A stretch of DNA of 64,000 nt from Macrostomum lignano (Eukaryota), in the NCBI GenBank assembly GCA_002269645.1, contig NIVC01002769.1, positions 1 to 64,000 of the forward strand, read 5' to 3'. This document shows positions 16,141 through 61,850 of the stretch, one piece after another. The number at the start of each line of letters is the position of its first letter. Position 1 is the first letter of the stretch. Under the pieces are notes generated by a model. That model did no database searches, had not been told where the DNA came from, and worked only from the letters and a program-made list of their open reading frames with translations. A program made the position numbers and the translations under genes.

Positions 16141-16819
16141 CTAGAAGTAGCAAGCTGCTTTTTAAGATGATGCCGTAATCTTGTTAAGCCATTAATGAAG
16201 CCATTAACAAAGAAACGATTTTAGTAGTTTTTGCCTTTTTCAACGATACATATGAATCATTTGTACACACCTGTACTTTAATCTATAACCAGACAAGTTA
16301 TACATGTAGTATAGATGAATCCTATATATTATTCAAAATAGCTTCTACTAATATAACAATCTATTTTAGGATGCACTTTTTCAGTCTAGTCCGGAACGGC
16401 AGTGTATACATGTATAAAAAAAACCCATCACAATTTCTGCAGCTAAAATTGGCAAAAAGTTTTTATAAAGGCAAGATGCAGACTGAGGCTGAGGGCGAGG
16501 CCGAGCGCCCGTCGAGAGAGGTAAAGAGCTGACAGAGAAAATGCCTTACTATGTGCAATTTCCATCCATTTTATGCAGCTTGCAGAAATGGAAATGACTA
16601 TATAGAAGCTGTATAGAATGCAGTCTGTAAGAATGGTGGCCCCTAGCAACTGCCGGGGCCAGACGGGTTTGGGTAGAAAAGTTTCTCAGCGATAAGAAGG
16701 TGCAGCCCAGCTTAAATGCTTGCAAGCACACCTGGTTGCAGAAAGTTGCGTAGCTCTCAAACTGTACGAGTTCACAAGATCAAATCCAACAGGCAGTTTA
16801 ACTAATTAATTAATTAACA

Positions 16820-27500: not shown

Positions 27501-28196
27501 CGACTCTACAATCTCAGCCCCTTGACTCTACAATCTCAGCCCCTTGACTCTACAATCTCAGCCCCTCGAAAAAATAGGCTACCAGAACTCACCCAGATAC
27601 TCGGGCGTGCCGCACATAGTATAAGTCCTATCCTTCAGCACTTTAGCGAAACCAAAGTCCGTGATCTTCAAATGACCCCGAGCATCAAGTAGCAGATTCT
27701 CGGGCTTCAGATCCCGATACACAACTGACATGTCGTGCAGGTACATGATAGCTGACAGAATCTCCGCAGCATAAAACAGCGTGGCAGCATTAGAAAAAGT
27801 ACCCGATGTTCTTAAATAGGAGAATATCTCGCCGCCGCAGACAAACTCGAACACCATGTAGAGAAACTTAATGTCGTGATTGGTCCAGTACAGCTTCACT
27901 AGGAATGGGTGACTCACGGTGTTCAATATAGCTTTCTCATTCTTGACATGCTCCACCTGCTTCAATCGCATCACATCGTCAATAACTAGAATTTTCAGTG
28001 CAAAATATTCATCAGTGTTTTTCTCTCGGATGACCATGACACGGCCGAAGGTGCCAGTGCCGACTGTGCGCAACAGTTCAGCATTACGCAACGAGAATTT
28101 TGACCAATCGACCAAGGATGGCTGATCCAGAGGTGCGTCCTCTGCAAGCTGCAGCTGCTGGACAGAAGAGGCCAGTCTCTCTGCGCCTTCAGCCAT
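24600..28196 (-). CDS. PRKX: PRKX-like cAMP-dependent protein kinase catalytic subunit, 350 aa; exons 28196-27593, 25420-25239, 24866-24600
   Basis: Intact AGC kinase motifs: [38 protein letters not shown] and C-terminal FxxF (YFRDF). PRKX-type stretches include [20 protein letters not shown] and GDTS. Intron phases 1 and 0 fit. Confidence 0.93.
25490..26010. repeat. Intronic minisatellite, 33-bp unit TGACCAATTTTATGATCGGACATTGCATCCATC
   Basis: About 15 copies in PRKX intron 1. Source of the 306/192/190-aa ORFs. Confidence 0.95.
26595..27570. repeat. Intronic minisatellite, 22-bp unit CTCAGCCCCTTGACTCTAAAAT with a degenerate middle block
   Basis: About 40 copies, starting ~20 bp after the PRKX exon-1 donor. 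Confidence 0.95.
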
Positions 28197-38100: not shown

Positions 38101-41100
38101 TCCTTATGGCCCGCTTGCAGTCACTTTTATGACGTTTTATGACGTCACTTTTATGATATTTAGTGATGTCCTGATATGACCCTTTTAATGAGGCCATGAT
38201 GATATGACCCATTTAATGAGGCCATGATGATATGACCCATTTAATGAGGCCATGATGATATGACCGATTTAATGAGGCCATGATGATATGACCTATTTAA
38301 TGAGGCCATGATGATATGACCTATTTAATGAGGCCATGATGATATGACCTATTTAATGAGGCCATGATGATATGACCTATTTAATGAGGCCATGATGATA
38401 TGACCCATTTAATGAGGCCATGATGATATGACCTATTTAATGATGCCATGATGATAAGACCCATTTAATGAGGCCATGATGATATGACCTATTTAATGAT
38501 GCCATGATGATAAGACCCATTTAATGAGGCCATGATGATATGACCCATTTAATGAGGCCATGATGATATGACCTATTTAATGATGCATGATGATAAGACC
38601 CATTTAATGAGGCCATGATGATATGACCTATTTAATGAGGCCATGATGATATGACCCATTTAATGAGGCGATGATGATATGACCTATTTAATGAGGCCAT
38701 GATGATATGATCTATTTAATGATGCCATGATGATATGACCCATTTAATGAGGCCATGATGGTATGACCTATTTAATGAGGCCATGATGATATGACCTATT
38801 TAATGAGGCCATGATGATATGACCTATTTAATGAGGCCATGATGATATGACCCATTTAATGAGGCCATGATGATATGACCTATTTAATGAGGCCATGATG
38901 ATATGACCTATTTAATGAGGCCATGATGATATGATCTATTTAATGAGGCCATGATGATATGACCCATTTAATGAGGCCATGATGATATGACCTATTTAAT
39001 GAGGCCATGATGATATGACCCATTTAATGAGGCCATGATGATATGACCTATTTAATGAGGCCATGATGATATGACCTATTTAATGAGGCCATGATGATAT
39101 GACCCATTTAATGAGGCCATGATGATATGACCTATTTAATGAGGCCATGATGATATGACCCATTTAATGAGGCCATGATGATATGACCTATTTAATGAGG
39201 CCATGATGATATGACCTATTTAATGAGGCCATGATGATATGACCTATTTAATGAGGCCATGATGATATGACCCATTTAATGAGGCCATGATGATATGACC
39301 TATTTAATGAGGCCATGATGATATGACCCATTTAATGAGGCCATGATGATATGACCTATTTAATGAGGCCATGATGATATGACCCATTTAATGAGGCCAT
39401 GATGATATGATGTATTTATTGAGGATAAGACCCATTTTTGAGGCCATGATATGACCCAGTTTTCCTCTAATTTATTCGAGCATTTTTATGACCTAATGCG
39501 ACTCGTTTTATAACGCGCTCCAATTTGACTCAGTTTGACTTATTGATAATGCGAAGCGAAAGCATCACTACATATCGTTAGTATTCGCAATTCGCATTGA
39601 ACACAAAACTGCACTGTGAATTCAATCAGGTTTTGCCCGTTCAAACTCTACAATGAAAAATCCAGCCGGACTTGAGACTCAAGTCTGGCGATTCCCGCCA
39701 TCAACAGTTGGCGCCAGCGGTAACAGCAGGTTTCGTAGAAATCGCAGCAATGGGCAGAAACTATCGGCAAAAGAGAATGGCGACTCGGATGAGTTCGATT
39801 ACGATGATGAGGATGATGATGATGAAGATTCTGAGGATTTTGTTGATGCTGGAGAGGATTCCGATGATAGCGGCAATAGCGGCGTTGTAAGCAGGCTGGA
39901 AGGTGGCAGGCGCTATCTTACGGCTCTGCTGGCTGGTAGTAGTGGTAAACGTCGCGGCAGGTACTTGAGGTTGCCGCAGTCATCGGCAGGTTGCGGCGCT
40001 GATAGCGGCGAAGGCATCTCGCGATCTCGCAGTTCACCGTCTGGTTGGCAACAGCAGCAGCAGCAGAAACAACAGCAACACAAACAAAAATATGGGCATA
40101 CTAGTCGTAGTCAGCAGTCTGGCTGTAACGAAAGCAAGTCAACTACTACTGCTGCTTCTACTAGTAATCGAGCAGGTAGTCAGTATGGTTTTGAAGAGAG
40201 ATCCTGTTTGTTTGTCCTGCCTGTAGTTAGCTTAGTGCACGCTGTTTGTAGTGCTTGTGCTATTATGCTATCCCTGCAAGAAGGCCCAACATGCAGAGCA
40301 CTGATGGGGTTAACAACTCTTAAGCCAAATCCCGGCCGCTTTCGGACAACACGCACAGACACGCACTGCAGGCTAGGCTCTGCAGCACTAGTTCTCCGAA
40401 AGCGATTGCGCTTAAATTATGATTATACGGGGTTGTAGCCTATAGTGGTCAGAGCGTCGGACTCACGACTGAAAGGTCGGGGGTTCGATTCTCGACCTAC
40501 TCGGAACAATTTGTGTCCTTGAGCAAGACACTTAACTCTGCATTGCTTCAGTTCACTCAGCTATAAAATGGGCGCCAGCATTAGCTGGGGTAATTGAGGG
40601 TGTGTTTTTGGACTGAACAGCCGTACGCAGCCTTCAGATGCGCCGCGCAATAGCTGCGGCTGAGCTGTCGGTTGCACATCTAGCCATTAGGGCAGGTGTA
40701 ATCAAAATTAACAATTGTGATAATAATTTTGTGTGTGTTTAGATTAAAAATAGAACCTGCAGTCAGCCTTCTACAGTTGTCTGAAAGTGGAAGGGTTTGG
40801 CAAAGATTCGGTTACCCTTTGGCTCTCGATCTGGGCCTTCTGACCTTCACTGTGTGTCTATTTTATATTCCTATATATATATATTCTACTTATTTACTTA
40901 ACTCTGTGTAGTGTTTTTTGCATTTTTGCCGAAGAAAGTTTACTTTAATGTATAGTTAATTGATTTTTAATCTTCTCGAGCCACTGAAACCTCTAATAGC
41001 AAACTGTTTATACTTTTCTAATCTCATTCCAATGAGGATATGAATTTAACCGTTATATTTATATACTGATTTATTGTATTTGGGTTTGGGGGATTTATAT

Positions 41101-43765
41101 GATTCAAAGGGAACTTGATACGAGGTATATCCGGGATTTAAGCCATGGATTAATGGGCATCAGCCAGGGGATGGCTTTCAGGTGGATGCTATTTGATTTA
41201 AACATCATCTTCGTTTAGAAACTAACAATTAATAGTGACTGGTGTCTATTTAAAATTAAATTAAAATAAGTCTTTAATGCTGTTTACATGCGTCCTAATT
41301 AGCAATTAACTGATCACTAGCCATATTATATGAAACTATACAAGCGTAAGTAAGATCTGAGAGGCATGTACACTTCACTGTGCCTTGTGGGTTGGCCCTC
41401 AAAGCCGCCTTAATTGCACGAGCAGAGCCAAGCCGAGATTCCAATTTAGCCCCAAATTAATGTGACTGCACTGGGAATCGAGCCTGGGCCGCTGGCACCG
41501 CTCTGGGCCACTCGGCTATACGGCCCCAGTTCTAATGTTTCAATGTTAATATAGACTATTCTCGCAGAAAACTTACATTAAAATCGTTTCAAGTACGTCG
41601 TGTACTTTATGGGTTACATTACATATGTATATTAATAAAGTGTAGTAATAATAATATAAAACTTTACTGAGCAAAGCCCATCTGTCATACTATGCCAAGA
41701 ATACTAGTCTAGCTCAGCAGCTCAATTTTCTTGTCTTAGATTGAGGAAAAGAGAACAAAATAGAGGGATTTTTCGTGGGGATTAGCTCCGTCCTGCCGCG
41801 TGGGCGGGTGTGAGGGGATTATTAATAATCTTCGGAGTCTAATCCCACCATTTATTGACAGACTCCTGCTCTAGCTAGCTAGCTAAGGAGAGAAAGGATA
41901 GAATGCCTCAGAACAACCGTTACTTATTCTCATTTTCTATTTTCTATTGCCTATTTATAATATTTCGAAATTGAATAAATTATACTCTGAGTATTTTATT
42001 AGCATGAGTACTGTTTGTTTTAGTGTGATGTATGACACCTTTATTTTATCATTTAGTAGCGTTGTGTCCTTTTGAGTTATTATATACTACTTTTAGTAGC
42101 TTGTGTCTGGTTTTTTACACTTTATTAATTTTTGTTTAGAAATTACGGTATCTACACCCACTGTATTAAAGTAGTTTAGCTACTTACTGTTAAGTAGTAT
42201 ATAATATATTTAATTTGTCATTTAAGTGTTTATAGCCTAGCCTTGCCCGTCTTAGGGCCATAGACATAACAAATCAGCTCGTCCATCAACAAGTACTTCC
42301 TCGACCCTGTTGTGTTCATTCTGCTTTTCCATGTTATACAGTAGTTTAGGCTGTCTATGGCCCTACCCTATGGTTGAAGAATATGACAAGAGGAAGGAAT
42401 TGTCAGAGTGTCACTTATATTTCTTCATAAAAGTGGAATAAATAGGCATGACTGTCTATATCCTCACTGACTCACCAACTAAACAACTAACTACCTTACA
42501 AATAATACAAAACGAATATTTCAATAATCCGGCAAATCTGTTAAAATTGAAATTCATCAAACAGAATACGACAGCGATGGCGACACGGAAGGCCTGATGC
42601 AGAAGCAGTACGAATCGGACAGGCGGGTTGAAATACCCGAACTGCAGGCTGACAAGCGCAGCTTTGAAGATCAGCGCAAAGACAGAGGCAGAGAAGGTGA
42701 GTAGTCGTGTTTTGATACTTGAAGCTAGAAAGAATTTATTTGATAATAAATAAAACATAAATATTAACATTTAATATGCATGCAACATTTTTTTCTGTTA
42801 TTTAATTTATAGTGGCAGCATAAACTAACATATTGTTTCATTTATTTCTTTGTATTTTACCCCGACCCTCTCTTAAAACCCACACAACGTTTGCTTTTAT
42901 CTCAACATTCGCCAATCAAGAAAGTAAGTTTTTTATATAAAGTTTTTTATATTCGCTGTTTATGATTTTCTCTCTGCATTAAGCTGGCAATCAATATTAT
43001 AGAAATAGTCTAATGATACTACTTACTTCAAAAAATCAGTAGCTTTAAAGGCTAGACAAACAAAATATGGTGGTTATAGTGTCACAAAAATAAGCTTAAA
43101 AGTTGTGCATCCGTGTTATTAATGATCTTTGTAAACACCTTGTTGCCTTTCTACCATTAACTAGGAATATGGTCTTTGTGCATTATGCGGAACTTGATTA
43201 TGCTTGTGATGCGGTACCTCTATGCACCCCCTGTTTCTGGTGCCACACTGCCTTCACCGCTGCCGTATAATTGTGTCACAGTCAGTACTTGTGTGCAATA
43301 TCCTGCATCCTTTAACTCTTTGTTTTTGTATGTTGCCTTATTACGTAATATAGACGGCTGAGATAGACTGTTCGTCTTTGCAATAAAACACAATAGAAAG
43401 GCTTATTAATATATGCTTATAGTATTCGTACTTTACACTTTACTCTTCTCATCCTCCCACAGTGGCCGTGCGTCACCCGGACCAGCCTACGGTGCTTATT
43501 GAGGGCCTGCTGTTTCGGGCCCTGTACCTGGGCTCCACTCAGCTGCTCTCGGAGGGACAGCCCAGCAAGTCTACTAGGATGGCCCAGGCTCAGGAGGCTG
43601 TGGGCCGGATTAAGGTGAGTCTGTCTGTGTGCCTGACTGACTGACTGTGTGTCTGTGTGTCTGTCTGTGTGACTGACTGTGTGTCTGTCTTAGTGTCTGT
43701 CTGTCTGTGTGTCTGTCTGTGTGACTGACTGTGTGTCTGTCTTAGTGTCTGTCTGTCTGTCTGTG

Positions 43766-43808
<43 letters not shown>

Positions 43809-43809
43809 G

Positions 43810-43857
<48 letters not shown>

Positions 43858-43865
43858 AGTCTGAC

Positions 43866-43898
<33 letters not shown>

Positions 43899-45760
43899 GC
43901 ATCTCCCTTACTGCTGCAATGCTGTGAGGCTCACGGAGCTCCTCCGCGCGCACCGTCCCGCAGGCACCAGACGGGGAGCATCAGCCCTGCGTCCCAGTCG
44001 ACCTGTTCATCTCAACCGAGAAGATCATGGTGCTGAACACCAACCTGCAGGAGATCATGATGGACCATGCGCTCAAGACCATCTCCTACATCGCCGACAT
44101 CGGCAACGTGCTGGTGTTCATGGCCAGGCGGCGCTTCGTGCAGCAGAGCGAACGGCGACAGACAAAAATTGTCTGCCACGTGTTTGAGACTGACGAGGTG
44201 AATGACCCTTTATGTGTGTTTAGCCTGATTGGTTTTATGGTGCGTTTTGATTCTGGTCCCACATCCTCAGTTACTGAACCACCAGCCTCCCAGATCCTCC
44301 CTTGCAGCGCCACCAGACTTCCAGATCCTCAGTTGCTGGGCCAGCCTCTCCTCAGTTGCTGGGCCAGCCTCTCATCAGTTGCTGGGCCGGCCTCTCCTCA
44401 GTTGCTGGGCCAGCCTCCCAGATCCTCAGTTGCTGGGCCAGGCTCCCAGATCCTCAGTTGCTGGGCCAGTCTCCTAAATACTCAGTTGCTGGGCCAGCCT
44501 CCTAGATCCTCAGTTGCTGGGCCAGCCTCCCAGATCCTCAGTTGCTGGGCCAGCCTCCCAGATCCTCAGTTGCTGGGCCAGCCTCACAGAGTGTCAGTTG
44601 CTGAGCCAGTCTCTCTTCAGTTTCTGAGCCAGCCTCCCAGATCCTCAGTTGCTGGGCCAGCCTCCCAGACCCTCATTTTCTAGGCCAGCCTCCCAGATCC
44701 TCAGTTGCTGGGCCAGGCTCTCAGATCCTCAGTTGCTGGGCCAGTCTCCCAGATCCTCAGTTGCTGGGCCAGCCTCCCGGATCCTCCGTTGCTGGGCCAG
44801 CCTCCCGGATCCTCCGTTGCTAAGCCAGTCTCCCAGACCCTCAGTTTCTGGGCCAGCCTACCAGATCCTCAGTTGCCCTTTACAATAGGAACATTTTCAA
44901 AATTTCCGAAAAATATTCAGCATTTGCCAATAAAAATAAGCACAAAACCCCTCTTTGCCCCTATCAGTAGTGCAGTCAGCGCATATTGCCAACCAAATTT
45001 CCTGGCCCAAATTTAAAACAACTCGCAGGCCCAGCTGGTTGCCCAATCGATTGGCCAGGCCTTCCAAGTGGCCTACATGGAATTCCTACGCGCCAACGGC
45101 ATCGAAGACCCCGGCTACCAGCTCAGAGACATGGACTACCAAGATGTGCTCAACCAGCAGGACATCATTGGCGAGGAACTGGCTCTATTCAGCCGATCTG
45201 AAACCCAGAAAGAAGTTGTAGTGCCCAAAACCAAAGGCGAACCGCTGGGCGTAGTGATAGTGGAGAGCGGTTGGGGCTCCATGCTGCCCACTGTGGTCCT
45301 GGCCAACATGCAGCCCTCCGGTCCTGCCGCTCGCTGCGGCCAGCTGAACATTGGCGACCAGATGCTTGCCATCAACGGAGTCAGTCTGGTTGGCCTGCCC
45401 CTGGCTACGTGCCAGCAGCATGTTCGAGCTTGCAAATCCAACACGGCTGTGAAAGTTCGCCTGGTGTCCTGCCCGCCAGTTGTTGAAGTCCTCATCCGAC
45501 GGCCGGATGTGAAATTCCAGTTGGGATTCAGCGTTCAGAATGGCGTGATTTGTTCCCTGCTGAGAGGCGGCATTGCCGAGCGGGGCGGGGTTCGAGTCGG
45601 GCATCGGATTATCGAGATTAACGGCCAGTCTGTGGTGGCCACTCCGCACGACCGCATTGTTGCTATGCTGGCCTCCGGGGTTGGCGAGATTCACATGAAA
45701 ACCATGCCGACATCGATCTTCAGATTGCTGACTGGGCAGGAGGCTCCTCACTATATCTGA
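35115..45760 (+). CDS. APBA1: X11/Mint/LIN-10 (APBA family) adaptor with PTB + 2 PDZ, 753 aa; exons 35115-35824, 36486-36787, 42565-42696, 43463-43614, 43964-44197, 45029-45760
   Basis: PTB: [20 protein letters not shown]...[28 protein letters not shown]...[41 protein letters not shown]1: [25 protein letters not shown]2: [35 protein letters not shown]. Ends in HYI. Phases 2,1,1,0,0 are consistent. The vertebrate paralog cannot be assigned. Confidence 0.93.
35885..36440. repeat. Intronic minisatellite, 26-bp unit GATTAGCTGAGTCGTAAAAGATTAAG
   Basis: About 21 copies in Mint intron 1. Confidence 0.93.
36905..37455. repeat. Purine-rich ~15-bp minisatellite GGGGAGAGGTAGGCA
   Basis: Strand-asymmetric G/A tract in Mint intron 2, with G-quadruplex/triplex potential. 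Confidence 0.9.
38170..39455. repeat. Intronic minisatellite, 28-bp unit ATGATGATATGACCTATTTAATGAGGCC
   Basis: About 45 copies. Confidence 0.96.
39630..40175 (+). CDS. Probable alternative Mint exon (cassette 39630-40175, or alternative first exon from ATG 39653)
   Basis: Open, codon-like acidic/Gln-rich frame. Phase-1 acceptor AATCAG| at 39629, phase-1 donor CAG|GTAGTC at 40176, and ACAATG start context at 39653 like other genes in the window. Confidence 0.55.
40429..40712 (+). mobile_element. Full-length tRNA-derived CORE-type SINE (copy 2 of 3)
   Basis: A box TAGCCTATAGTGG, B box GGTTCGATTCT, CORE-like central domain, and 3' tail ATTAGGGCAGGTGTAAT plus an A/T-rich end. Confidence 0.85.
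41360..41527 (-). mobile_element. Possible second tRNA-derived SINE family (single copy)
   Basis: Minus strand begins GGGGCCGTATAGCCGAGTGG (A-box-like) followed by GGCTCGATTCCC (B-box-like). Not a complete cloverleaf. Confidence 0.4.
42253..42365. mobile_element. Possible mini-MITE: TA|GGGCCATAGACA ... TGTCTATGGCCC|TA
   Basis: Perfect 14-bp inverted termini including TA, 113 bp in total. Confidence 0.4.
43620..43900. repeat. (TCTG)n/(TG)n microsatellite filling a Mint intron
   Basis: Read directly between the donor at 43615 and the acceptor at 43963. Confidence 0.95.
44270..44875. repeat. Intronic minisatellite, 28-bp unit CAGATCCTCAGTTGCTGGGCCAGCCTCC (reverse complement of the 6140-6960 unit)
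   Basis: About 20 more degenerate copies in the last Mint intron. Confidence 0.93.
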
Positions 45761-45879
45761 TCGATTGCTTAAGATGTGTGATATTTTGTTATGTTGAATT
45801 GCTTTTTATGTTTGCTAAGCATTACTGAATTATGATAGTTTTGTGCGAGCTTAAGTGGTAATAATATATTTCATGCATT

Positions 45880-47599
45880 GTAGATAGAATCTACCCATAA
45901 ACTACCCATTCTGTAGTGGAGTCTATCCATAAAACTACCCATTCTGTAGTGGGAGTCCACCCATAAACTACCCATTCTGTAGTGGAGTCTATCCATAAAC
46001 TACCCATTCTGTAGTGGGAGTCCACCCATAAACTACCCATTCTGTAGTGGAGTCTATCCATAAAACTACCCATTCTGTAGTGGAGTACCCATAAACTACC
46101 CATTCTGTAGTGGAGTCTACCCATAAACTACCCATTCTGTAGTGGAGTCTACCCATAAACTCCCATTCTGTAGTGGAGTCTACCCATAAACTACCCATTC
46201 TGTAGTGGAGTCTATCCATAAAACTACCCATTCTGTAGTGGAATCTACCCATAAACTACCCATTCTGTAGTGGAGTCTACCCATAAACTACCCATTCTGT
46301 AGTGGAGTCTATCCATAAAACTACCCATTCTGTAGTGGAGTCTACCCATAAACTACCCATTCTGTAGTGGAGTCTACCCATAAACTACCCATTCTGTAGT
46401 GGAGTATCCATAAACTACCCATTCTGTAGTGGAGTATCCATAAACTACCCATTCTGTAGTGAAGTCTACCCATAAACTACCCATTCTGTAGTGGAGTCTA
46501 CCCATAAACTACCCATTCTGTAGTGGAGTCTATCCATAAAACTACCCATTCTGTAGTGGAGTCTACCCATAAACTACCCATTCTGTAGTGGAGTCTACCC
46601 ATAAACTACCCATTCTGTAGTGGAGTATCCATAAACTACCCATTCTGTAGTGAAGTCTACCCATAAACTACCCATTCTGTAGTGGAGTCTACCCATAAAC
46701 TACCCATTCTGTAGTGGAGTCTATCCATAAAACTACCCATTCTGTAGTGGAGTCTACCCATAAACTACCCATTCTGTAGTGGAGTCTACCCATAAACTAC
46801 CCATTCTGTAGTGGAGTCTATCCATAAAACTACCCATTCTGTAGTGGAGTCTACCCATAAACTACCCATTCTGTAGTGGAGTCTACCCATAAACTACCCA
46901 TTCTGTAGTGGAGTATCCATAAACTACCCATTCTGTAGTGAAGTCTACCCATAAACTACCCATTCTGTAGTGAAGTCTACCCATAAACTACCCATTCTGT
47001 AGTGGAGTCTACCCATAAACTACCCATTCTGTAGTGGAGTCTATCCATAAAACTACCCATTCTGTAGTGGAGTCTACCCATAAACTACCCATTCTGTAGT
47101 GGAGTCTACCCATAAACTACCCATTCTGTAGTGGAGTATCCATAAACTACCCATTCTGTAGTGGAGTATCCATAAACTACCCATTCTGTAGTGGAGTATC
47201 CATAAACTACCCATTCTGTAGTGGAGTCTACCCATAAACTCCCATTCTGTAGTGGAGTATCCATAAAATACCCATTCTGTAGTGGAGTCTACCCATAAAC
47301 TCCCATTCTGTAGTGGAGTATCCATAAAATACCCATTCTGTAGTGAAGTCTACCCATAAACTACCCATTCTGTAGTGGAGTCTACCCATAAACTACCCAT
47401 TCTGTAGATAGAATCTACCCATAAACTACCCATTCTGTAGTAGAGTCTACCCATAAACTACCCATTCTGTAGTGGAGTCTACCCATAAACTACCGAATCT
47501 TTAGATAGAATCTACCCAATGAACAACCGATTCTGTAGTAGAATCTACCCACTAAACTACCGAATCTGTAGTAGAATCTACCCAATAAACTACCGAATC
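45880..47599. repeat. 32-bp minisatellite CCATAAACTACCCATTCTGTAGTGGAGTCTAC (30-33-bp variants), also at ~48317-50036, ~50754-52473, ~53191-55060
   Basis: About 53 copies per block. It ends in a variant unit CTACCGAATCTGTAGTAGAATCTACCC, which continues further only after the last block. Confidence 0.97.
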
Positions 47600-47601
47600 A
47601 T

Positions 47602-48197
47602 TCATTGGCGAGGAACTGGCTCTATTCAGCCGATCTGAAACCCAGAAAGAAGTTGTAGTGCCCAAAACCAAAGGCGAACCGCTGGGCGTAGTGATAGTGG
47701 AGAGCGGTTGGGGCTCCATGCTGCCCACTGTGGTCCTGGCCAACATGCAGCCCTCCGGTCCTGCCGCTCGCTGCGGCCAGCTGAACATTGGCGACCAGAT
47801 GCTTGCCATCAACGGAGTCAGTCTGGTTGGCCTGCCCCTGGCTACGTGCCAGCAGCATGTTCGAGCTTGCAAATCCAACACGGCTGTGAAAGTTCGCCTG
47901 GTGTCCTGCCCGCCAGTTGTTGAAGTCCTCATCCGACGGCCGGATGTGAAATTCCAGTTGGGATTCAGCGTTCAGAATGGCGTGATTTGTTCCCTGCTGA
48001 GAGGCGGCATTGCCGAGCGGGGCGGGGTTCGAGTCGGGCATCGGATTATCGAGATTAACGGCCAGTCTGTGGTGGCCACTCCGCACGACCGCATTGTTGC
48101 TATGCTGGCCTCCGGGGTTGGCGAGATTCACATGAAAACCATGCCGACATCGATCTTCAGATTGCTGACTGGGCAGGAGGCTCCTCACTATATCTGA
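47602..48197 (+). pseudogene. Duplicated Mint 3' fragment (PDZ1-PDZ2-HYI), copy 2; no native acceptor or ATG start
   Basis: Same translated sequence as 45165-45760. The upstream frame is closed by TAA in the minisatellite. Confidence 0.8.
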
Positions 48198-50038
48198 TCG
48201 ATTGCTTAAGATGTGTGATATTTTGTTATGTTGAATTGCTTTTTATGTTTGCTAAGCATTACTGAATTATGATAGTTTTGTGCGAGCTTAAGTGGTAATA
48301 ATATATTTCATGCATTGTAGATAGAATCTACCCATAAACTACCCATTCTGTAGTGGAGTCTATCCATAAAACTACCCATTCTGTAGTGGGAGTCCACCCA
48401 TAAACTACCCATTCTGTAGTGGAGTCTATCCATAAACTACCCATTCTGTAGTGGGAGTCCACCCATAAACTACCCATTCTGTAGTGGAGTCTATCCATAA
48501 AACTACCCATTCTGTAGTGGAGTACCCATAAACTACCCATTCTGTAGTGGAGTCTACCCATAAACTACCCATTCTGTAGTGGGGTCTACCCATAAACTCC
48601 CATTCTGTAGTGGAGTCTACCCATAAACTACCCATTCTGTAGTGGAGTCTATCCATAAAACTACCCATTCTGTAGTGGAATCTACCCATAAACTACCCAT
48701 TCTGTAGTGGAGTCTACCCATAAACTACCCATTCTGTAGTGGAGTCTATCCATAAAACTACCCATTCTGTAGTGGAGTCTACCCATAAACTACCCATTCT
48801 GTAGTGGAGTCTACCCATAAACTACCCATTCTGTAGTGGAGTATCCATAAACTACCCATTCTGTAGTGGAGTATCCATAAACTACCCATTCTGTAGTGAA
48901 GTCTACCCATAAACTACCCATTCTGTAGTGGAGTCTACCCATAAACTACCCATTCTGTAGTGGAGTCTATCCATAAAACTACCCATTCTGTAGTGGAGTC
49001 TACCCATAAACTACCCATTCTGTAGTGGAGTCTACCCATAAACTACCCATTCTGTAGTGGAGTATCCATAAACTACCCATTCTGTAGTGAAGTCTACCCA
49101 TAAACTACCCATTCTGTAGTGGAGTCTACCCATAAACTACCCATTCTGTAGTGGAGTCTATCCATAAAACTACCCATTCTGTAGTGGAGTCTACCCATAA
49201 ACTACCCATTCTGTAGTGGAGTCTACCCATAAACTACCCATTCTGTAGTGGGGTCTATCCATAAAACTACCCATTCTGTAGTGGAGTCTACCCATAAACT
49301 ACCCATTCTGTAGTGGAGTCTACCCATAAACTACCCATTCTGTAGTGGAGTATCCATAAACTACCCATTCTGTAGTGAAGTCTACCCATAAACTACCCAT
49401 TCTGTAGTGAAGTCTACCCATAAACTACCCATTCTGTAGTGGAGTCTACCCATAAACTACCCATTCTGTAGTGGAGTCTATCCATAAAACTACCCATTCT
49501 GTAGTGGAGTCTACCCATAAACTACCCATTCTGTAGTGGAGTCTACCCATAAACTACCCATTCTGTAGTGGAGTATCCATAAACTACCCATTCTGTAGTG
49601 GAGTATCCATAAACTACCCATTCTGTAGTGGAGTATCCATAAACTACCCATTCTGTAGTGGAGTCTACCCATAAACTCCCATTCTGTAGTGGAGTATCCA
49701 TAAAATACCCATTCTGTAGTGGAGTCTACCCATAAACTCCCATTCTGTAGTGGAGTATCCATAAAATACCCATTCTGTAGTGAAGTCTACCCATAAACTA
49801 CCCATTCTGTAGTGGAGTCTACCCATAAACTACCCATTCTGTAGATAGAATCTACCCATAAACTACCCATTCTGTAGTAGAGTCTACCCATAAACTACCC
49901 ATTCTGTAGTGGAGTCTACCCATAAACTACCGAATCTTTAGATAGAATCTACCCAATGAACAACCGATTCTGTAGTAGAATCTACCCACTAAACTACCGA
50001 ATCTGTAGTAGAATCTACCCAATAAACTACCGAATCAT

Positions 50039-50634
50039 TCATTGGCGAGGAACTGGCTCTATTCAGCCGATCTGAAACCCAGAAAGAAGTTGTAGTGCCC
50101 AAAACCAAAGGCGAACCGCTGGGCGTAGTGATAGTGGAGAGCGGTTGGGGCTCCATGCTGCCCACTGTGGTCCTGGCCAACATGCAGCCCTCCGGTCCTG
50201 CCGCTCGCTGCGGCCAGCTGAACATTGGCGACCAGATGCTTGCCATCAACGGAGTCAGTCTGGTTGGCCTGCCCCTGGCTACGTGCCAGCAGCATGTTCG
50301 AGCTTGCAAATCCAACACGGCTGTGAAAGTTCGCCTGGTGTCCTGCCCGCCAGTTGTTGAAGTCCTCATCCGACGGCCGGATGTGAAATTCCAGTTGGGA
50401 TTCAGCGTTCAGAATGGCGTGATTTGTTCCCTGCTGAGAGGCGGCATTGCCGAGCGGGGCGGGGTTCGAGTCGGGCATCGGATTATCGAGATTAACGGCC
50501 AGTCTGTGGTGGCCACTCCGCACGACCGCATTGTTGCTATGCTGGCCTCCGGGGTTGGCGAGATTCACATGAAAACCATGCCGACATCGATCTTCAGATT
50601 GCTGACTGGGCAGGAGGCTCCTCACTATATCTGA
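50039..50634 (+). pseudogene. Duplicated Mint 3' fragment, copy 3
   Basis: As for copy 2; identical 179-aa ORF. Confidence 0.8.
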
Positions 50635-52475
50635 TCGATTGCTTAAGATGTGTGATATTTTGTTATGTTGAATTGCTTTTTATGTTTGCTAAGCATTACT
50701 GAATTATGATAGTTTTGTGCGAGCTTAAGTGGTAATAATATATTTCATGCATTGTAGATAGAATCTACCCATAAACTACCCATTCTGTAGTGGAGTCTAT
50801 CCATAAAACTACCCATTCTGTAGTGGGAGTCCACCCATAAACTACCCATTCTGTAGTGGAGTCTATCCATAAACTACCCATTCTGTAGTGGGAGTCCACC
50901 CATAAACTACCCATTCTGTAGTGGAGTCTATCCATAAAACTACCCATTCTGTAGTGGAGTACCCATAAACTACCCATTCTGTAGTGGAGTCTACCCATAA
51001 ACTACCCATTCTGTAGTGGGGTCTACCCATAAACTCCCATTCTGTAGTGGAGTCTACCCATAAACTACCCATTCTGTAGTGGAGTCTATCCATAAAACTA
51101 CCCATTCTGTAGTGGAATCTACCCATAAACTACCCATTCTGTAGTGGAGTCTACCCATAAACTACCCATTCTGTAGTGGAGTCTATCCATAAAACTACCC
51201 ATTCTGTAGTGGAGTCTACCCATAAACTACCCATTCTGTAGTGGAGTCTACCCATAAACTACCCATTCTGTAGTGGAGTATCCATAAACTACCCATTCTG
51301 TAGTGGAGTATCCATAAACTACCCATTCTGTAGTGAAGTCTACCCATAAACTACCCATTCTGTAGTGGAGTCTACCCATAAACTACCCATTCTGTAGTGG
51401 AGTCTATCCATAAAACTACCCATTCTGTAGTGGAGTCTACCCATAAACTACCCATTCTGTAGTGGAGTCTACCCATAAACTACCCATTCTGTAGTGGAGT
51501 ATCCATAAACTACCCATTCTGTAGTGAAGTCTACCCATAAACTACCCATTCTGTAGTGGAGTCTACCCATAAACTACCCATTCTGTAGTGGAGTCTATCC
51601 ATAAAACTACCCATTCTGTAGTGGAGTCTACCCATAAACTACCCATTCTGTAGTGGAGTCTACCCATAAACTACCCATTCTGTAGTGGAGTCTATCCATA
51701 AAACTACCCATTCTGTAGTGGAGTCTACCCATAAACTACCCATTCTGTAGTGGAGTCTACCCATAAACTACCCATTCTGTAGTGGAGTATCCATAAACTA
51801 CCCATTCTGTAGTGAAGTCTACCCATAAACTACCCATTCTGTAGTGAAGTCTACCCATAAACTACCCATTCTGTAGTGGAGTCTACCCATAAACTACCCA
51901 TTCTGTAGTGGAGTCTATCCATAAAACTACCCATTCTGTAGTGGAGTCTACCCATAAACTACCCATTCTGTAGTGGAGTCTACCCATAAACTACCCATTC
52001 TGTAGTGGAGTATCCATAAACTACCCATTCTGTAGTGGAGTATCCATAAACTACCCATTCTGTAGTGGAGTATCCATAAACTACCCATTCTGTAGTGGAG
52101 TCTACCCATAAACTCCCATTCTGTAGTGGAGTATCCATAAAATACCCATTCTGTAGTGGAGTCTACCCATAAACTCCCATTCTGTAGTGGAGTATCCATA
52201 AAATACCCATTCTGTAGTGAAGTCTACCCATAAACTACCCATTCTGTAGTGGAGTCTACCCATAAACTACCCATTCTGTAGATAGAATCTACCCATAAAC
52301 TACCCATTCTGTAGTAGAGTCTACCCATAAACTACCCATTCTGTAGTGGAGTCTACCCATAAACTACCGAATCTTTAGATAGAATCTACCCAATGAACAA
52401 CCGATTCTGTAGTAGAATCTACCCACTAAACTACCGAATCTGTAGTAGAATCTACCCAATAAACTACCGAATCAT

Positions 52476-53071
52476 TCATTGGCGAGGAACTGGCTCTATT
52501 CAGCCGATCTGAAACCCAGAAAGAAGTTGTAGTGCCCAAAACCAAAGGCGAACCGCTGGGCGTAGTGATAGTGGAGAGCGGTTGGGGCTCCATGCTGCCC
52601 ACTGTGGTCCTGGCCAACATGCAGCCCTCCGGTCCTGCCGCTCGCTGCGGCCAGCTGAACATTGGCGACCAGATGCTTGCCATCAACGGAGTCAGTCTGG
52701 TTGGCCTGCCCCTGGCTACGTGCCAGCAGCATGTTCGAGCTTGCAAATCCAACACGGCTGTGAAAGTTCGCCTGGTGTCCTGCCCGCCAGTTGTTGAAGT
52801 CCTCATCCGACGGCCGGATGTGAAATTCCAGTTGGGATTCAGCGTTCAGAATGGCGTGATTTGTTCCCTGCTGAGAGGCGGCATTGCCGAGCGGGGCGGG
52901 GTTCGAGTCGGGCATCGGATTATCGAGATTAACGGCCAGTCTGTGGTGGCCACTCCGCACGACCGCATTGTTGCTATGCTGGCCTCCGGGGTTGGCGAGA
53001 TTCACATGAAAACCATGCCGACATCGATCTTCAGATTGCTGACTGGGCAGGAGGCTCCTCACTATATCTGA
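52476..53071 (+). pseudogene. Duplicated Mint 3' fragment, copy 4
   Basis: As for copy 2; identical 179-aa ORF. Confidence 0.8.
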
Positions 53072-55609
53072 TCGATTGCTTAAGATGTGTGATATTTTGT
53101 TATGTTGAATTGCTTTTTATGTTTGCTAAGCATTACTGAATTATGATAGTTTTGTGCGAGCTTAAGTGGTAATAATATATTTCATGCATTGTAGATAGAA
53201 TCTACCCATAAACTACCCATTCTGTAGTGGAGTCTATCCATAAAACTACCCATTCTGTAGTGGGAGTCCACCCATAAACTACCCATTCTGTAGTGGAGTC
53301 TATCCATAAACTACCCATTCTGTAGTGGGAGTCCACCCATAAACTACCCATTCTGTAGTGGAGTCTATCCATAAAACTACCCATTCTGTAGTGGAGTACC
53401 CATAAACTACCCATTCTGTAGTGGAGTCTACCCATAAACTACCCATTCTGTAGTGGGGTCTACCCATAAACTCCCATTCTGTAGTGGAGTCTACCCATAA
53501 ACTACCCATTCTGTAGTGGAGTCTATCCATAAAACTACCCATTCTGTAGTGGAATCTACCCATAAACTACCCATTCTGTAGTGGAGTCTACCCATAAACT
53601 ACCCATTCTGTAGTGGAGTCTATCCATAAAACTACCCATTCTGTAGTGGAGTCTACCCATAAACTACCCATTCTGTAGTGGAGTCTACCCATAAACTACC
53701 CATTCTGTAGTGGAGTATCCATAAACTACCCATTCTGTAGTGGAGTATCCATAAACTACCCATTCTGTAGTGAAGTCTACCCATAAACTACCCATTCTGT
53801 AGTGGAGTCTACCCATAAACTACCCATTCTGTAGTGGAGTCTATCCATAAAACTACCCATTCTGTAGTGGAGTCTACCCATAAACTACCCATTCTGTAGT
53901 GGAGTCTACCCATAAACTACCCATTCTGTAGTGGAGTATCCATAAACTACCCATTCTGTAGTGAAGTCTACCCATAAACTACCCATTCTGTAGTGGAGTC
54001 TACCCATAAACTACCCATTCTGTAGTGGAGTCTATCCATAAAACTACCCATTCTGTAGTGGAGTCTACCCATAAACTACCCATTCTGTAGTGGAGTCTAC
54101 CCATAAACTACCCATTCTGTAGTGGAGTCTATCCATAAAACTACCCATTCTGTAGTGGAGTCTACCCATAAACTACCCATTCTGTAGTGGAGTCTACCCA
54201 TAAACTACCCATTCTGTAGTGGAGTATCCATAAACTACCCATTCTGTAGTGAAGTCTACCCATAAACTACCCATTCTGTAGTGAAGTCTACCCATAAACT
54301 ACCCATTCTGTAGTGGAGTCTACCCATAAACTACCCATTCTGTAGTGGAGTCTATCCATAAAACTACCCATTCTGTAGTGGAGTCTACCCATAAACTACC
54401 CATTCTGTAGTGGAGTCTACCCATAAACTACCCATTCTGTAGTGGAGTATCCATAAACTACCCATTCTGTAGTGGAGTATCCATAAACTACCCATTCTGT
54501 AGTGGAGTATCCATAAACTACCCATTCTGTAGTGGAGTCTACCCATAAACTCCCATTCTGTAGTGGAGTATCCATAAAATACCCATTCTGTAGTGGAGTC
54601 TACCCATAAACTCCCATTCTGTAGTGGAGTATCCATAAAATACCCATTCTGTAGTGAAGTCTACCCATAAACTACCCATTCTGTAGTGGAGTCTACCCAT
54701 AAACTACCCATTCTGTAGATAGAATCTACCCATAAACTACCCATTCTGTAGTAGAGTCTACCCATAAACTACCCATTCTGTAGTGGAGTCTACCCATAAA
54801 CTACCGAATCTTTAGATAGAATCTACCCAATGAACAACCGATTCTGTAGTAGAATCTACCCACTAAACTACCGAATCTGTAGTAGAATCTACCCAATAAA
54901 CTACCGAATCTGTAGTAGAATCTACCCACTAAACTACCGAATCTGTAGTAGAATCTACCCAATGAACTACCGAATCTGTAGTAGAATCTACCCACTAAAC
55001 TACCGAATCTGTAGTAGAATCTACCCAATGAACTACCGAATCTGTAGTAGAATCTACTGAAGCTTCCCCATCAATAAGTAGAATGTACCACTATACAATT
55101 GTTTCTGATTTTAGCGCACTACGATATCTGAGTGTCTCATTGTGTGTACATGCGTGTAAAAATTATTGTTATTCAGTAGCCTGAAGTTGTCATGGGGAGA
55201 ACTCATTCATTAATTACTGAAATATTGATTTGCTTGCATTAATTCTCCTTACCCCCTCCTGTCTGCATGACGTCACCATTTTATTAATGTTCCATTTCTT
55301 GACATTGCAATTCAAAAGCTTACAAAATGCAATACTTTATACATGTGAAGAACAAGGATAATTAGATGTTAATTAAGCATGTTGTTATTCTTATTGCTAA
55401 TTAGTAAATTGTATAAGAGAACTCTTTTGTGTATGTGCTCACTGTTATTTTGGTGCGTTTAGTTTTTGTTTTAACTGTCCGCTTTGTTATTTTGTTTGGT
55501 GTAAATTAATTATTTTAAAAAACTGGATTTAATGCAGTAGCTACGCTCGTAAATCATATTTATTATTCGTAATAATTCAACTGTTTTAAATACCGAATTC
55601 CAAAATATT

Positions 55610-56854: not shown

Positions 56855-57210
56855 GTGGAAAAAATCGCCCTTCAACCAACCATTTTGGAAAAAAATTGCC
56901 CTTTAACTAACCGTATTGGGGAAAAATCGCCCTTGAACTAACCATCTTGGGGAAAAATCGCCCTTCAACTAACCATATTGGGGAAAAATCGCCCTTTAAC
57001 TAGCTATCTTGGGGGAAAAATCGCCCTTCAACTAGCTATATTGGGGGAAAAATCGCCCTTTAACTAGCTATCTTGGGGGGAAAATCGCCCTTCAACTAAC
57101 CGTCTTGGGGAAAAATCGCCCTTTAACTAACCATCTTGGGGAAAAATCGCCTTTTAACTAACCATCTTGGGTAAAAATCGCCCTTTAAACAACTATCTTA
57201 GAAAAAATGC
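56855..57210. repeat. Degenerate ~31-bp minisatellite GGGGAAAAATCGCCCTTTAACTAACCATCTT
   Basis: About 11 copies, 3' of the F-box gene. Confidence 0.88.
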
Positions 57211-57487: not shown

Positions 57488-60400
57488 TCAGTCGCTGTGC
57501 ACGCGGACTCGCCGACCTCTATATGAGTTCAGAAACTGATCCAATCCGTTTGCAAAATTGTCAAATTGTAAACCCGACAGCTTCAGGTCAGTCAGGTGCG
57601 GGCAGGCCCCGGCGATGCTGACCAAGGCAGAGTCAGTGAGGCTGCGACAGTCGCTCAGCTCTAGCCTGCGGAGGCCCCTAGCAACCGGAGTGCGGCACAG
57701 TTCCGCCACGAATTCGTCATTTAGACTGGCATCGCTAAACTTCAATGCCGCGAATTCGTGCAGCTCAGGCAGTGGCTGAGTGGCTCCACGTTTGAGCAGA
57801 TTTTCCCACACTTTGCCGCTCAAGCGGATGCAGTTAGTGAGGCGGAGGCGACGCAGGCGGGACAGCAGGGTGAGCAAATCCGATAGCAGTTTGTCATCGC
57901 AGTCGCTGATGTTCAGACTGGTCAGGTCTGAAGTAGGCGAGTGAGGGTTTTGCGCGATGGGTGAGCCAGCGATTCCCAAATCTTAGCGTTTAGATAAATG
58001 AATTTCAGGGTGAGATGGGAAATCTAGGGTGAGATGGGAGAATCTAGAGTGAGATTGGAGAATCTAGGGTGAGATAGGATAATCTAGGGTGAGATACGAG
58101 ACTTTAGGGTGGGATGTGGGAACTCGAGAGTGAGATTAAAAATCTAGGGTGAGATAAAAGAATCTAGAGTGAGATTGGAGAATCTAGGGTGAGATACGCG
58201 AATATAGGGTGAGATGGGAGAATCTAGGGTGAGATGGGAGCATCTAGCGTGAGACAGGAGAATCTAGGGTGGGATGTGAGAACTCAAGAGTGAGATTAAA
58301 AATCGAGGGTGAGATAGAAGAATCTAGAGTGGGATTGGAGAATCTAGGATGAGATAGGATAATCTAGGGTGAAATAGGAGAATTTAGGGTGAAATGTGAG
58401 AACTCAAGAGTGAGATTAAAAATCGAGGGTGAGATAGAAGAATCTAGAGTGGGATTGGAGAATCTAGGATGAGATAGGATAATCTAGGGTGAAATAGGAG
58501 AATTTAGGGTGAAATGTGAGAACTCAAGAGTGAGATTAAAAATCGAGGGTGAGATAGAAGAATCTAGAGTGAGATTGGAGAATCTAGGATGAGATAGGAT
58601 AATCTAGGGTGAGATTGGAGAATCTAGAGTGAGATTGGAGAATCTAGGATGAGATAGGATAATCTAGGGTGAGATAAAAGAATCTAGAGTGAGATTGGAG
58701 AATCTAGGGTAAGATAAGAGAATCTAGCGTGAGATAGGAGAATCTAGGGTGAGATTGGAGAATCTAGGGTGAGATGGGAGAATCTAGCGTGAGATAGGAG
58801 AATCTAGGGTGAGACTGGAGAATCTAGGGTGAGATAAAAGAATCTAGGGTGAGACTGGAGAATCTAGGGTGAGATGGGAGAATCTAGCGTGAGAAAGGAG
58901 AAATAGGAAAAATCTACTCACCAGAGCATGGTCGCAATCCAACCAGCAAGCCCCGCATGCAGCCATGTTTAAGCTCTTGAATTGGCAGCTCAAATCTCTT
59001 GAGACCTCGCGGCAGTAGCGATTGTAAGTCCGGCTGTCTCAGTTTCCGAAAACTCGGCAGCTTCAAATCCTCAATGCCCGAGGGTAGATTAGCAACAATT
59101 TTGCGATAGCACTCTGAGTCCAGCTCGTCATGACTGGATATCTTGAGTCGCCGCAACTTGGGACAGCCATTGAGCAGTTCCACAAAACCGGTTGCGCTAA
59201 TCATACATAGCGAGACATTTTTCAGCACTAAAGACTGCAGATTCGGACAGCCGGAAGCCAGAGGACCCGCGTGACTTTCGGTGAACTCGCCGAATTGAAG
59301 CTTCAGAGTCGTCAGGTAGGGAGCCAGAGACAGCAGCCGGTGCAAATGTTCTGCGTTAAGGGAATATATTTTTTTCTCAAAAATATCTCATTTGGTGGGA
59401 AATCCCTTAAATGGGGACTACCAAGGTGGAAAATCCCCCGAGTGGGAAACTTCCTAAAGGGGAAGTCCCCTAAGTGGGAATCCCCTAGATGAGAAATCAT
59501 ACAGGTTAGGTGAGAAATCCCCTAGGTGGGAAATCCATTAGGTCGAAATCCCAGAGATAGGAAATCCCCCGAGTGGGAAATTTTCTGGAGGGGAAGTTCC
59601 GTAAGTGGAATACTTTGGGTGAAAAATCATACAGGTTAGGTGGAATATCCCGTAGGTGGGAAATCCCCTGCGTAGAAAATCCCTGGTGGGAAATCCCTTA
59701 GTTAGAAATCCCCTACGTGGAAAATCCTTGGTGGGAAATTACCTAGGTGGAAAATCCCTTCGTTGGAAATCCCCTAGGTGGGAAATCCCCTGGTGGGAAA
59801 TTACCTAGGTGGAAAATCCCTGGTGGGAAATCCCCTAGGTGGGAAATCCCCTGGTGGGAAATTACCTAGGTGGAAAATCCCTGGTGGGAAATCATCTAGG
59901 TGGGAAATCCCGTAGTTGTAAATCCCCTAGGTGGAAAATCCCTGGTGGGAAATCCCTTGGTTGGAAATCCAAGAGGTAGGAAATTTCCTAGGTGAAAAAA
60001 TATCCTAGATGGGATATCGCTTAGGTGGGAAATTTCCCGATAGGAAATCCTAGAGCTGCCAGATGAGGAATTCCCTAGATTATGATAATGATCATATAAG
60101 AGTACATTAGTTTAAAAAAACCCTAGGTTAGAAAATCTCATAAAGCATTTGTAATGAAAAAAATAGCAATTAACACCAACCATCATAGCACAGATCGCTG
60201 GCATTCAAGACAAGCTCGCGAATACTAGTACCATCAACCATTTCGTCCAGAAACAAAGGAAACGTAGCTTCATGCAGAAAGTTCAGCCGCGTCAACCGGC
60301 TAAACAGAGATGCCAGCTGAGGTAGCGGCAGTGGATTGGAGTCCGGTCCAGCTAGGACACTCTGACGAAACTCCAAATCGACAAGTTCCAAACAGCCTTC

Positions 60401-61850
60401 GTTTAAAGCGGTCACGGATTCCTCAGTCAGCAGGTCTCTGCCAAAACGAATCAATTTTAAAGTACAAAGCTGAGAACAGGATTGCCCCAGAACTACTAGC
60501 GGATTTTGCTCTTCAGTAGGTAATCCATCGAATCCTTGGATAGTCAGAGCCTGCAGACAGGGCGAGTTGCTGAGAAACGTGTTGAGCAGTTGTACACTGC
60601 GCCTGTTGTACTCAGCATCCGAGCTGCATAACTCAAAATGCAGCTGTTGAATACTGGCCGATGAACAGAAAGATGTCCAATACGACAGCTGGTTAACCGG
60701 AGTTGGACTGTCAATAATGGTTTGAGCTCGAATTCGAATACTGTTGCGCCATAGAAGGGGCTGAGCAGTGAGCTGACGCCATCGCTTGTTCAGCTGAGCA
60801 CATCGGCTAAGGGTGGCCTGGTCTAGCTCGGATAAAATCCTGGTTAGCAACTCGGTTGGCAGCTGCTCCAGTTGACAGGGATGATTGAAGGCCTGAAGGC
60901 GTGAGGTCGTAATTTAGAGTCACTCTTAGTTTAGAGAATAATACAGAAGAATCTAGGCTGAGATAAGAGAATTCATAGATGAGAATAGATGATTTCTAGG
61001 GAGAAGAGAATCCAGGGTGAGATTAAAGAATCTACAGGTAGATAAGAGAATCCATATGTGAGATTAGAGAATCTACAGGTGATATTAGAGAATCTAAAGG
61101 TAGATAAGAGAATCCAAGGCTAAGATTAGAGAATCTACAGGTAGATAAGAGAATCCAGGATGAGATTAGAGAATCTACAGGTGAAATCAGAGAATCCACA
61201 AGTAGATAAGTGAATCCAAGGGTGAGATTTGAGAATCCACAGGTAGATAATAGAATCCAACGAAGGGTGAGATGAGAGAATCCATGAGTGAAATTAGAGA
61301 ATCTACAGTTAGATAATAAATTATAATTTATTACACCTGCCCTAATGCCCTATTCCTCAATGCATCTGAAGGCTGCATACAGCTGTTCAGTCCAAGGACT
61401 GGTGGGTCGCCACAGGCCACACACACCCTCAATTACCCCAGCTAATGCTGGCACCCATTTTAAAGCTGGGTGAACTGAAGGAATGTAGAGTTAAGTATCT
61501 TGCTCAAGAACACAAATTGTTCCAAGTGGGTCAAGAATCAAACCCCCAACCTTTAAGTTGTGAGTCTAAAATGCTTTAACCACTGGGCTACAACCCCTTA
61601 AGAGATAAGAGAATCACTAAATGAGATTGTAGAATCTGCTAAGACAATAGGGAATTGCAAGAAAGATAAAGTATGGCCACTGTAGATTCTACTAGGGATC
61701 AATAAGAGAATCAATATTGAATACTTGGTGAACCTAAACATCAAATGACAAGCTGACCTAACAGACAATGCTTACCTCCAATTGCTTTGACCTGCTTTGA
61801 TTATTCTCTAGTAGGCTATGCTCACTTTTATTTTCTTTAAATTCTGACAT
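57488..61850 (-). CDS. F-box/leucine-rich-repeat (FBXL-type) protein, 551 aa; exons 61850-61776, 60892-60181, 59350-58922, 57927-57488
   Basis: F-box LEQLPTELLTRILSELDQATLSRCAQLNKRWRQL. Cys-containing LRRs include GCPNLQSLVL, GCPKLRRLKI, LRRLELSDCRSLTDSAL and ACPHLTDLKL. First exon has ACAATG and GAG|GTAAGC; phases 0,1,1 fit. Confidence 0.85.
57990..58905. repeat. Intronic minisatellite, 20-bp unit GAGATTGGAGAATCTAGGGT with higher-order blocks
   Basis: About 45 copies in F-box intron 3. Confidence 0.93.
59390..60080. repeat. Degenerate 15-16-bp intronic minisatellite AAATCCCCTAGGTGGG
   Basis: Fills F-box intron 2. Confidence 0.9.
60940..61315. repeat. Degenerate ~20-bp intronic minisatellite (GAGATTAGAGAATCTACAGGT), interrupted by a SINE
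   Basis: Related to the 57990-58905 unit. It resumes briefly after 61600. Confidence 0.8.
61325..61597 (-). mobile_element. Full-length, more diverged CORE-type SINE (copy 3 of 3)
   Basis: Reverse complement of the 40429 copy: GGGGTTGTAGCCCAGTGG head, CORE-like body, ATTAGGGCAGGTGTAAT tail. Confidence 0.85.

Follow-up and report, generated by a model that had tools for sequence, protein, structure and literature searches.

What is to be made of a gene whose last coding exon is followed by three further, truncated copies of itself? The question is raised by a 64,000-bp stretch of the Macrostomum lignano genome (GenBank assembly GCA_002269645.1, contig NIVC01002769.1, positions 1 to 64,000, forward strand; hereafter the window), in which the 3' end of a Mint/X11/LIN-10 gene, with its PDZ1-PDZ2 cassette, stands four times head to tail. 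A preliminary description made from the letters alone had reported this array and had proposed that the extra copies might make PDZ-only competitors or serve as spare terminal exons. Our analysis favours a real, very young tandem segmental amplification of the Mint 3' end whose extra units are most likely inert, a reading to which we give a probability of roughly 0.6.

Four near-identical units at the 3' end of an intact Mint gene

Comparison of the window with itself at a shift of 2,437 bp gave a match spanning 45165-52473, which places the array at 45165-54910, and self-blastn returned the same region as a single 7,309-bp alignment at 99.959% identity. The two methods agree with each other and with all the coordinates of the four-copy tandem in the preliminary description. 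All four units lie on the plus strand. Unit 1 (45165-47601) runs on from the upstream Mint exons, whereas unit 2 (47602-50038) consists of a 5'-truncated exon fragment, its flank and a minisatellite. Unit 3 (50039-52475) follows, and unit 4 (52476-54910), which at 2,435 bp has two bases less than the full 2,437 bp, has the same sequence as unit 3 and passes into the rest of the original minisatellite, of which 147 bp (54911-55057) lie beyond the right breakpoint before unique sequence begins.

The content of a unit, previously given as PDZ tandem, C-terminal tail, stop codon, short flank and minisatellite, was recovered in full. The coding part (45165-45760 in unit 1; 596 bp) comprises a linker, PDZ1, PDZ2 and a PHYI tail and closes with TGA at 45758-45760. 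An AT-rich 3' flank of 129 bp (45761-45889), present in every unit, follows the stop, and the remainder is a minisatellite block of 1,712 bp (45890-47601) that counts 53-54 repeats, each 30-33 bp long and of several variants (consensus TGGAGTCTACCCATAAACTACCCATTCTGTAG), and that recurs at +2437, +4874 and +7311.

Differences among the four units amount to two substitutions and no indels, for a pairwise divergence of 0-0.08%. Unit position 982 is A in unit 1 (46146) and G in the other three (48583, 51020 and 53457); unit position 1651 is G in unit 2 (49252) and A in the other three, as at 46815 in unit 1 and 51689 in unit 3. Both lie in the minisatellite, exactly as had been claimed, and the further claims of identical coding parts and a conserved array length also stand: all four minisatellite blocks have equal length and carry their variants in equal order. 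Neighbouring repeats within the minisatellite are about 92-93% alike, compared with 99.96% at the 2,437-bp shift, which indicates that the 2,437-bp periodicity is a separate, later event on top of the minisatellite and far beyond chance.

Homologues used as tblastn queries located two Mint/LIN-10 exons upstream of the array, one for the first part of the PTB/PID domain (43463-43614; acceptor cccacag/, donor AAG/gtgagt, the slash marking the splice site) and one for its second part (43964-44197, ending CHVFETDE/gtgaat in phase 0). The terminal coding exon (45029-45760) opens at the acceptor tcgcag/GCC (45028/45029), just after an in-frame TAA at 45014, and encodes the last PTB helix, the linker, PDZ1, PDZ2, the PHYI tail and the TGA stop. 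Joined in a spliced model (43463-43614, 43964-44197 and 45029-45760, all plus strand), the three exons give an unbroken frame of 371 residues that matches positions 1-139 of the 140 of the PID profile (E = 8e-38) and contains two PDZ stretches (E = 3e-28). This model covers the C-terminal half of the protein, from 43463 on; candidate upstream exons at 35115-40438 are of low complexity and gave no Pfam matches. Since unit 1 follows the upstream exons without a break in sequence or frame and retains the stop codon and the proximal flank, the parent gene is intact. A (GTCT)70 microsatellite (43619-43899) starts a few bases past the donor of the PTB exon at 43614 (AAG/gtgagtctgtct...).

That each unit holds the whole Mint/X11 PDZ tandem, as first described, was borne out by two Pfam PDZ domains in the unit coding part and by an alignment that covers residues 3-185 of the 185 in the X11/Mint1 PDZ tandem structure (PDB 1U3B, E = 3e-84). 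The Mint2 PTB-PDZ1-PDZ2 structure (PDB 3SUZ) matched at residues 1-243 (E = 2.6e-105). Among the matches listed, the closest database proteins were the LIN-10/APBA proteins of Capitella (79%), Nucella, Candidula, Lingula, Ridgeia and Helobdella, and vertebrate APBA1-3 were mostly 56-66% identical, with 63-66% for the best of those listed; no protein in the searched collection exceeded 79% identity. Judged by these comparisons, the gene is a Mint/X11/LIN-10 orthologue nearest to annelid, mollusc and brachiopod proteins. By the ranking of the matches, the sequence would belong to a protostome animal, probably a lophotrochozoan.

The gene is also an ordinary member of the family, with the PTB domain, two PDZ domains and conserved C-terminal PDZ1-binding tail of the Mint/X11/APBA/LIN-10 proteins represented by 3SUZ and 1U3B. 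The binding motif P-x-Y/F-I/L is predicted from the sequence as PHYI, a form common to Capitella, Lingula, Ridgeia and Helobdella, the commonest form being PVYI. Autoinhibition of Mint by its tail bound to PDZ1, cited as established in the preliminary description, is indeed so regarded (Long et al. 2005, as cited in PMC11405698). One difference lies in gene structure: PDZ tandem and tail occupy a single exon here (45029-45760), whereas in Lingula they fall into four tblastn segments (5244-6984 of LFEI02000154.1), which suggests that introns were lost in this lineage or else gained in Lingula.

One new junction, repeated three times

At the start of each extra unit, minisatellite sequence is joined to exon position 45165 through the same new junction, GAATC-AT-TCATTGGCG (47595-47610 on the plus strand, and again at 50032 and 52469). 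The junction sequence GAATCATTCATTGGCG occurs exactly three times in the window, at 47595, 50032 and 52469. The parental sequence at the left breakpoint (slash) is CAGCAGGACA/TCATTGGCGAGG and that at the right breakpoint is AAACTACCGAATC/TGTAGTAGAATC; the junction itself is composed of AAACTACCGAATC-AT-TCATTGGCGAGG. Homology between the two parental breakpoints is limited to ATC, and the junction can be read either as a 2-nt filler (AT) or as a 3-nt microhomology (ATC) with a 4-nt slip. From this we infer a non-homologous event, by end-joining or template switching, rather than recombination between repeats. A true tandem duplication of an internal segment should leave identical junctions and a last unit that passes into more of the original repeat, as is the case here with three junctions and the 147 bp of minisatellite beyond unit 4.

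The left breakpoint at 45165 cuts the terminal exon 136 nt past its start, within the PTB-PDZ1 linker (...NQQDI/IGEELALFS), so that units 2-4 are without the native splice acceptor and the last PTB helix. The junction also turns an isoleucine codon, ATC, into TTC (phenylalanine), and an in-frame TAA stands just upstream of it at 47586.

The alternative that survives best is an assembly artefact, in which there is either no genomic duplication at all or a true array of two or three units that the assembler over-expanded. The preliminary description had called the event extremely recent or partly an assembly artefact, which is a fair statement of the alternatives. Several points weigh against the reading that we prefer. 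Both the copy number and the existence of the array rest on one assembly. The near-perfect identity of the units extends to an equal length of 53-54 repeats in every block of a supposedly unstable repeat array, which fits a very recent event or an artefact. Units 3 and 4 are identical, and both substitutions sit in one motif context beside a G run, where a context-specific consensus error is possible. The silence of units 2-4 is deduced rather than observed, and if the poly(A) site of the parent gene lay beyond the minisatellite, the array would come to lie inside or just after its 3' untranslated region (UTR). False tandem gene duplications are, moreover, common in assemblies (PMC9516828), and a likely one affects this same gene in Lingula.

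The Lingula case shows what such an error looks like. On Lingula anatina contig LFEI02000154.1, two copies of the Mint 3' half lie about 8 kb apart (4211-11891 and 12326-20205), are 92.7-98.5% alike, have N at their boundary (11894) and include, in the duplicate, part of a neighbouring Peptidase_C1_2 gene. By these features it is a classic false-duplication pattern, and the annotated 360-aa 'lin-10-like' protein of Lingula (Peptidase_C1_2 + PDZ + PDZ) is probably a chimera created by haplotype false duplication. PDZ-region-only database entries exist for other invertebrates as well, of which at least one, this Lingula protein, looks like the product of a duplicated assembly. The Nucella entry P0002 covers the PDZ region only, with no contig placement obtained, and the Capitella locus has one PDZ tandem in one copy. 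In a search for independent copies of the Macrostomum locus itself, neither an exact-protein look-up of the 179-aa open reading frame (ORF) nor a scan of metagenomes with a 34-mer that spans the stop codon gave a match.

The array shares with false tandem duplications an apparent gene gain beside the parent and a very high identity. It differs in that their described marks, a gap between the copies and haplotype-level divergence (PMC9516828), are absent where they can be checked: the window holds only A, C, G and T, with no N, and the units show no haplotype-like divergence. It further differs in having four copies rather than two and a defined junction. That junction, precise and with its filler, is found three times and nowhere else in the window; assemblers do not invent such a junction, and at least one duplication junction must therefore be present in the reads. 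Three unit sequences can be told apart, and unique sequence borders the unit set off by the variant at position 982, which anchors that variant in place. The lack of a single indel over 4 x 2,437 bp (9.7 kb) rich in short homopolymer runs indicates an accurate consensus and argues against error-driven under-collapse. An array of 9.7 kb is also within reach of ordinary long reads. Self-blastn of the entire 64-kb window revealed no second large duplication, and thus no hint of a general assembly problem. Weighing both sides, we consider an artefact unlikely and the presence of a tandem amplification in the genome highly probable; that the number of units is exactly four is held somewhat less firmly.

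Origin and order of events

On the reading of a real amplification, the array would have formed in two steps. The first, which can be read from the junction, would be one illegitimate event that joined the minisatellite point after CTACCGAATC (equivalent to 54910) to 45165, by end-joining or a replicative template switch, and so produced the first 2,437-bp duplication. In the second, the 2.4-kb units would have undergone unequal homologous recombination with one another, or replication would have slipped between them, until there were four copies. Since the three junctions are identical, the extra units were copied from an already duplicated unit, most simply by unequal exchange.

The two substitutions allow a tentative order. 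Both are A/G differences and affect one and the same base of the repeat motif, GTGG[A/G]GTCTA, where the repeat consensus has A. The G variant was found in none of the other approximately 50 repeats of a unit, and A is thus likely to be ancestral. Written for positions 982 and 1651, units 1 to 4 are (A,A), (G,G), (G,A) and (G,A), a pattern that a stepwise tree fits without homoplasy. The first duplication would have been followed by a change from A to G at 982 in the distal unit, then by two more copies of that unit, and last by a change from A to G at 1651 in unit 2. The shared context of the two substitutions may reflect a mutational hotspot or, again, a consensus error specific to that context.

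The sequence suggests that the amplification is extremely recent, or that conversion has kept the array uniform, or that it is in part an artefact. If real, the array would be nearly neutral, a variant whose copy number probably changes from one individual to another.

A one-step origin was also considered: the two breakpoints would have been joined into an extrachromosomal circle of 2,437 bp, rolling-circle replication would have multiplied it, and homologous recombination would have brought all the extra units back to the parent locus at once. Repeat-rich DNA often yields extrachromosomal circles, and such a route would account for junctions that are all identical and for an array in register with the parent locus. 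The G at 982 in units 2-4 and the private G at 1651 in unit 2 are more simply explained by stepwise growth, although one step with two later mutations would fit the same pattern, and nothing in the sequence separates the two routes. We regard the circle as a rather improbable origin.

Among known systems, the array belongs with ordinary tandem partial-gene duplications, or else is a macrosatellite at its beginning; it is a new instance rather than a new kind. With tandem partial-gene duplications and copy-number variants it shares head-to-tail units, one new junction repeated at every boundary, one breakpoint that falls in repeat-rich sequence, and units that have hardly diverged. It differs from them in nothing essential; its particulars are that a coding exon fragment is coupled to 1.7 kb of minisatellite and that the count has already reached four. 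Macrosatellites are tandem arrays of kilobase units that may hold coding sequence, for example human D4Z4/DUX4. The array resembles these in its direct tandem arrangement of a unit longer than 1 kb (2,437 bp x 4) that carries an ORF, and differs in having only four units, with no sign of age, homogenisation or spread, and in that the ORF represents an exon fragment truncated at its 5' end, not a complete gene. If real, it is a snapshot of the birth of a partial-gene array, in which an illegitimate junction by a minisatellite was followed by rapid expansion and two substitutions recorded the order of copying. It could also serve as a copy-number marker in the species.

The extra units and their surroundings

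Units 2-4 are, on present sequence grounds, most probably inert, either untranscribed or at most carried along as passengers of a 3' UTR or of read-through transcripts. No promoter is evident for any of them, because the sequence upstream of each extra unit is minisatellite. The next downstream gene, of the F-box/LRR type (57488-60850, with 20-31-bp minisatellites in its introns), lies on the minus strand, and the array therefore sits in the 3'-3' gap between convergent genes, a place where added DNA is least likely to disturb regulation. Taken together, the lack of an evident promoter, the lack of a native splice acceptor and the position between convergent genes make the units likely to be silent.

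Canonical AATAAA or ATTAAA is absent from the 129-bp flank, which has variant hexamers only. The motif AATAAA stands at 47584-47589 on the plus strand, 12 nt before the end of unit 1, and correspondingly at 50021, 52458 and 54895, and these unit ends hold the only canonical AATAAA from the stop codon to 56184. In the 10 kb past the Mint stop the sole canonical AATAAA, a candidate poly(A) signal of the gene, stands 12 nt upstream of the right breakpoint of the duplication. The first usable poly(A) signal of the parent gene is predicted before or at the end of unit 1.

A functional array was considered in three forms: PTB-less competitors for PDZ ligands or for the autoinhibitory tail, consisting of PDZ tandem and tail, alternative terminal exons, or a lengthened regulatory 3' UTR. 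Every unit has an intact frame for PDZ tandem and tail, without any difference among the four, the PHYI ending is the form conserved in lophotrochozoan Mints, autoinhibition by the tail on PDZ1 is established, and read-through transcripts could end unit by unit at the AATAAA motifs. The intact frames are, however, expected at such an age, and with no coding differences between the units they are silent on selection. We consider a functional array very unlikely, and both of the functional roles put forward in the preliminary description are unsupported, with nothing in the sequence to favour them.

The proposal of PDZ-only competitors meets several difficulties. Because of the in-frame TAA at 47586, the open PDZ frame of units 2-4 starts no earlier than 47589. 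The preliminary description had correctly named the two possible starts, a GTG at 47658, which opens the longest ORF (179 aa), and an ATG at 47718 (159 aa). GTG starts are rare in eukaryotes. The ATG, the first in the frame, stands in the weak context ctccATGc, at the codon for residue 85 of the terminal exon and some 24 residues into PDZ1; by alignment to 1U3B and 1U37 it lies past beta-1, the carboxylate-binding loop (PLGV) and beta-2 of that domain. In a product begun there, PDZ1 would be crippled and at most PDZ2 and the tail could fold. Nor is a promoter evident.

Spare terminal exons were rejected as the principal explanation, since the breakpoint lies inside the exon and the native acceptor (45028/45029) outside the unit. 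Two cryptic AG sites, gcgag/G (47613) and cccag/A (47646), are the only ones near the junction in frame with the phase-0 donor at 44197 and would speak for splicing into the copies, but both are weak, both are also present in unit 1, and a product spliced at either would be without the last PTB helix. Better-looking acceptors in the minisatellite, TTCTGTAG, run straight into stop codons.

A more specific possibility, which we rate as scarcely credible, is that the units are transcribed, from starts in the minisatellite or by read-through past unit 1, and yield a PTB-less PDZ2 with tail, or PDZ tandem with tail, that titrates PDZ ligands or occupies the PDZ1 of full-length Mint in trans. If this were true, an autoinhibited synaptic adaptor would have gained, only just now, a modulator whose dosage varies. 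The array has no bearing on open questions of Mint function unless its extra units prove to be expressed. Its more immediate consequence concerns annotation, where gene predictors will call three spurious 'PDZ-only LIN-10-like' genes at this locus.

A processed retrocopy can be dismissed, as a poly(A) tract is absent, the copies abut the parent and the unit end ...CTACCGAATCAT joins the next unit directly; the lack of introns in the copies is uninformative, as the segment that was copied falls inside a single exon.

Two antisense ORFs, 188 and 126 aa long, lie inside the units; they match no Pfam family and were treated as chance ORFs in GC-rich coding sequence. A scan against Rfam gave no structured-RNA match anywhere in the window. 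Elsewhere in the window, a serine/threonine protein kinase domain exon (Pkinase, E = 1e-44) lies on the minus strand at 27579-28217.

Tandem repeats are abundant throughout. According to Tandem Repeats Finder, about 41% of the window consists of tandem repeats with a period of at least 10, or about one third if the extra units are discounted. Its minisatellites form around 30 separate arrays with units of 15-41 bp, many of them 90-96% uniform, mostly in introns or intergenic sequence. A 28-bp minisatellite (TGGCCCAGCAACTGAGGATCTGGGAGGC or its reverse complement) is present at 6135-6923 and at 44395-44876, 38 kb apart and in opposite orientation, the latter copy sitting in the last Mint intron, which suggests a dispersed, possibly transposon-borne, repeat family. 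Likewise, the 30- and 31-bp minisatellites at 19419-20983 and 56860-57199 have a common core, AAATCGCCC, and may be related repeat families.

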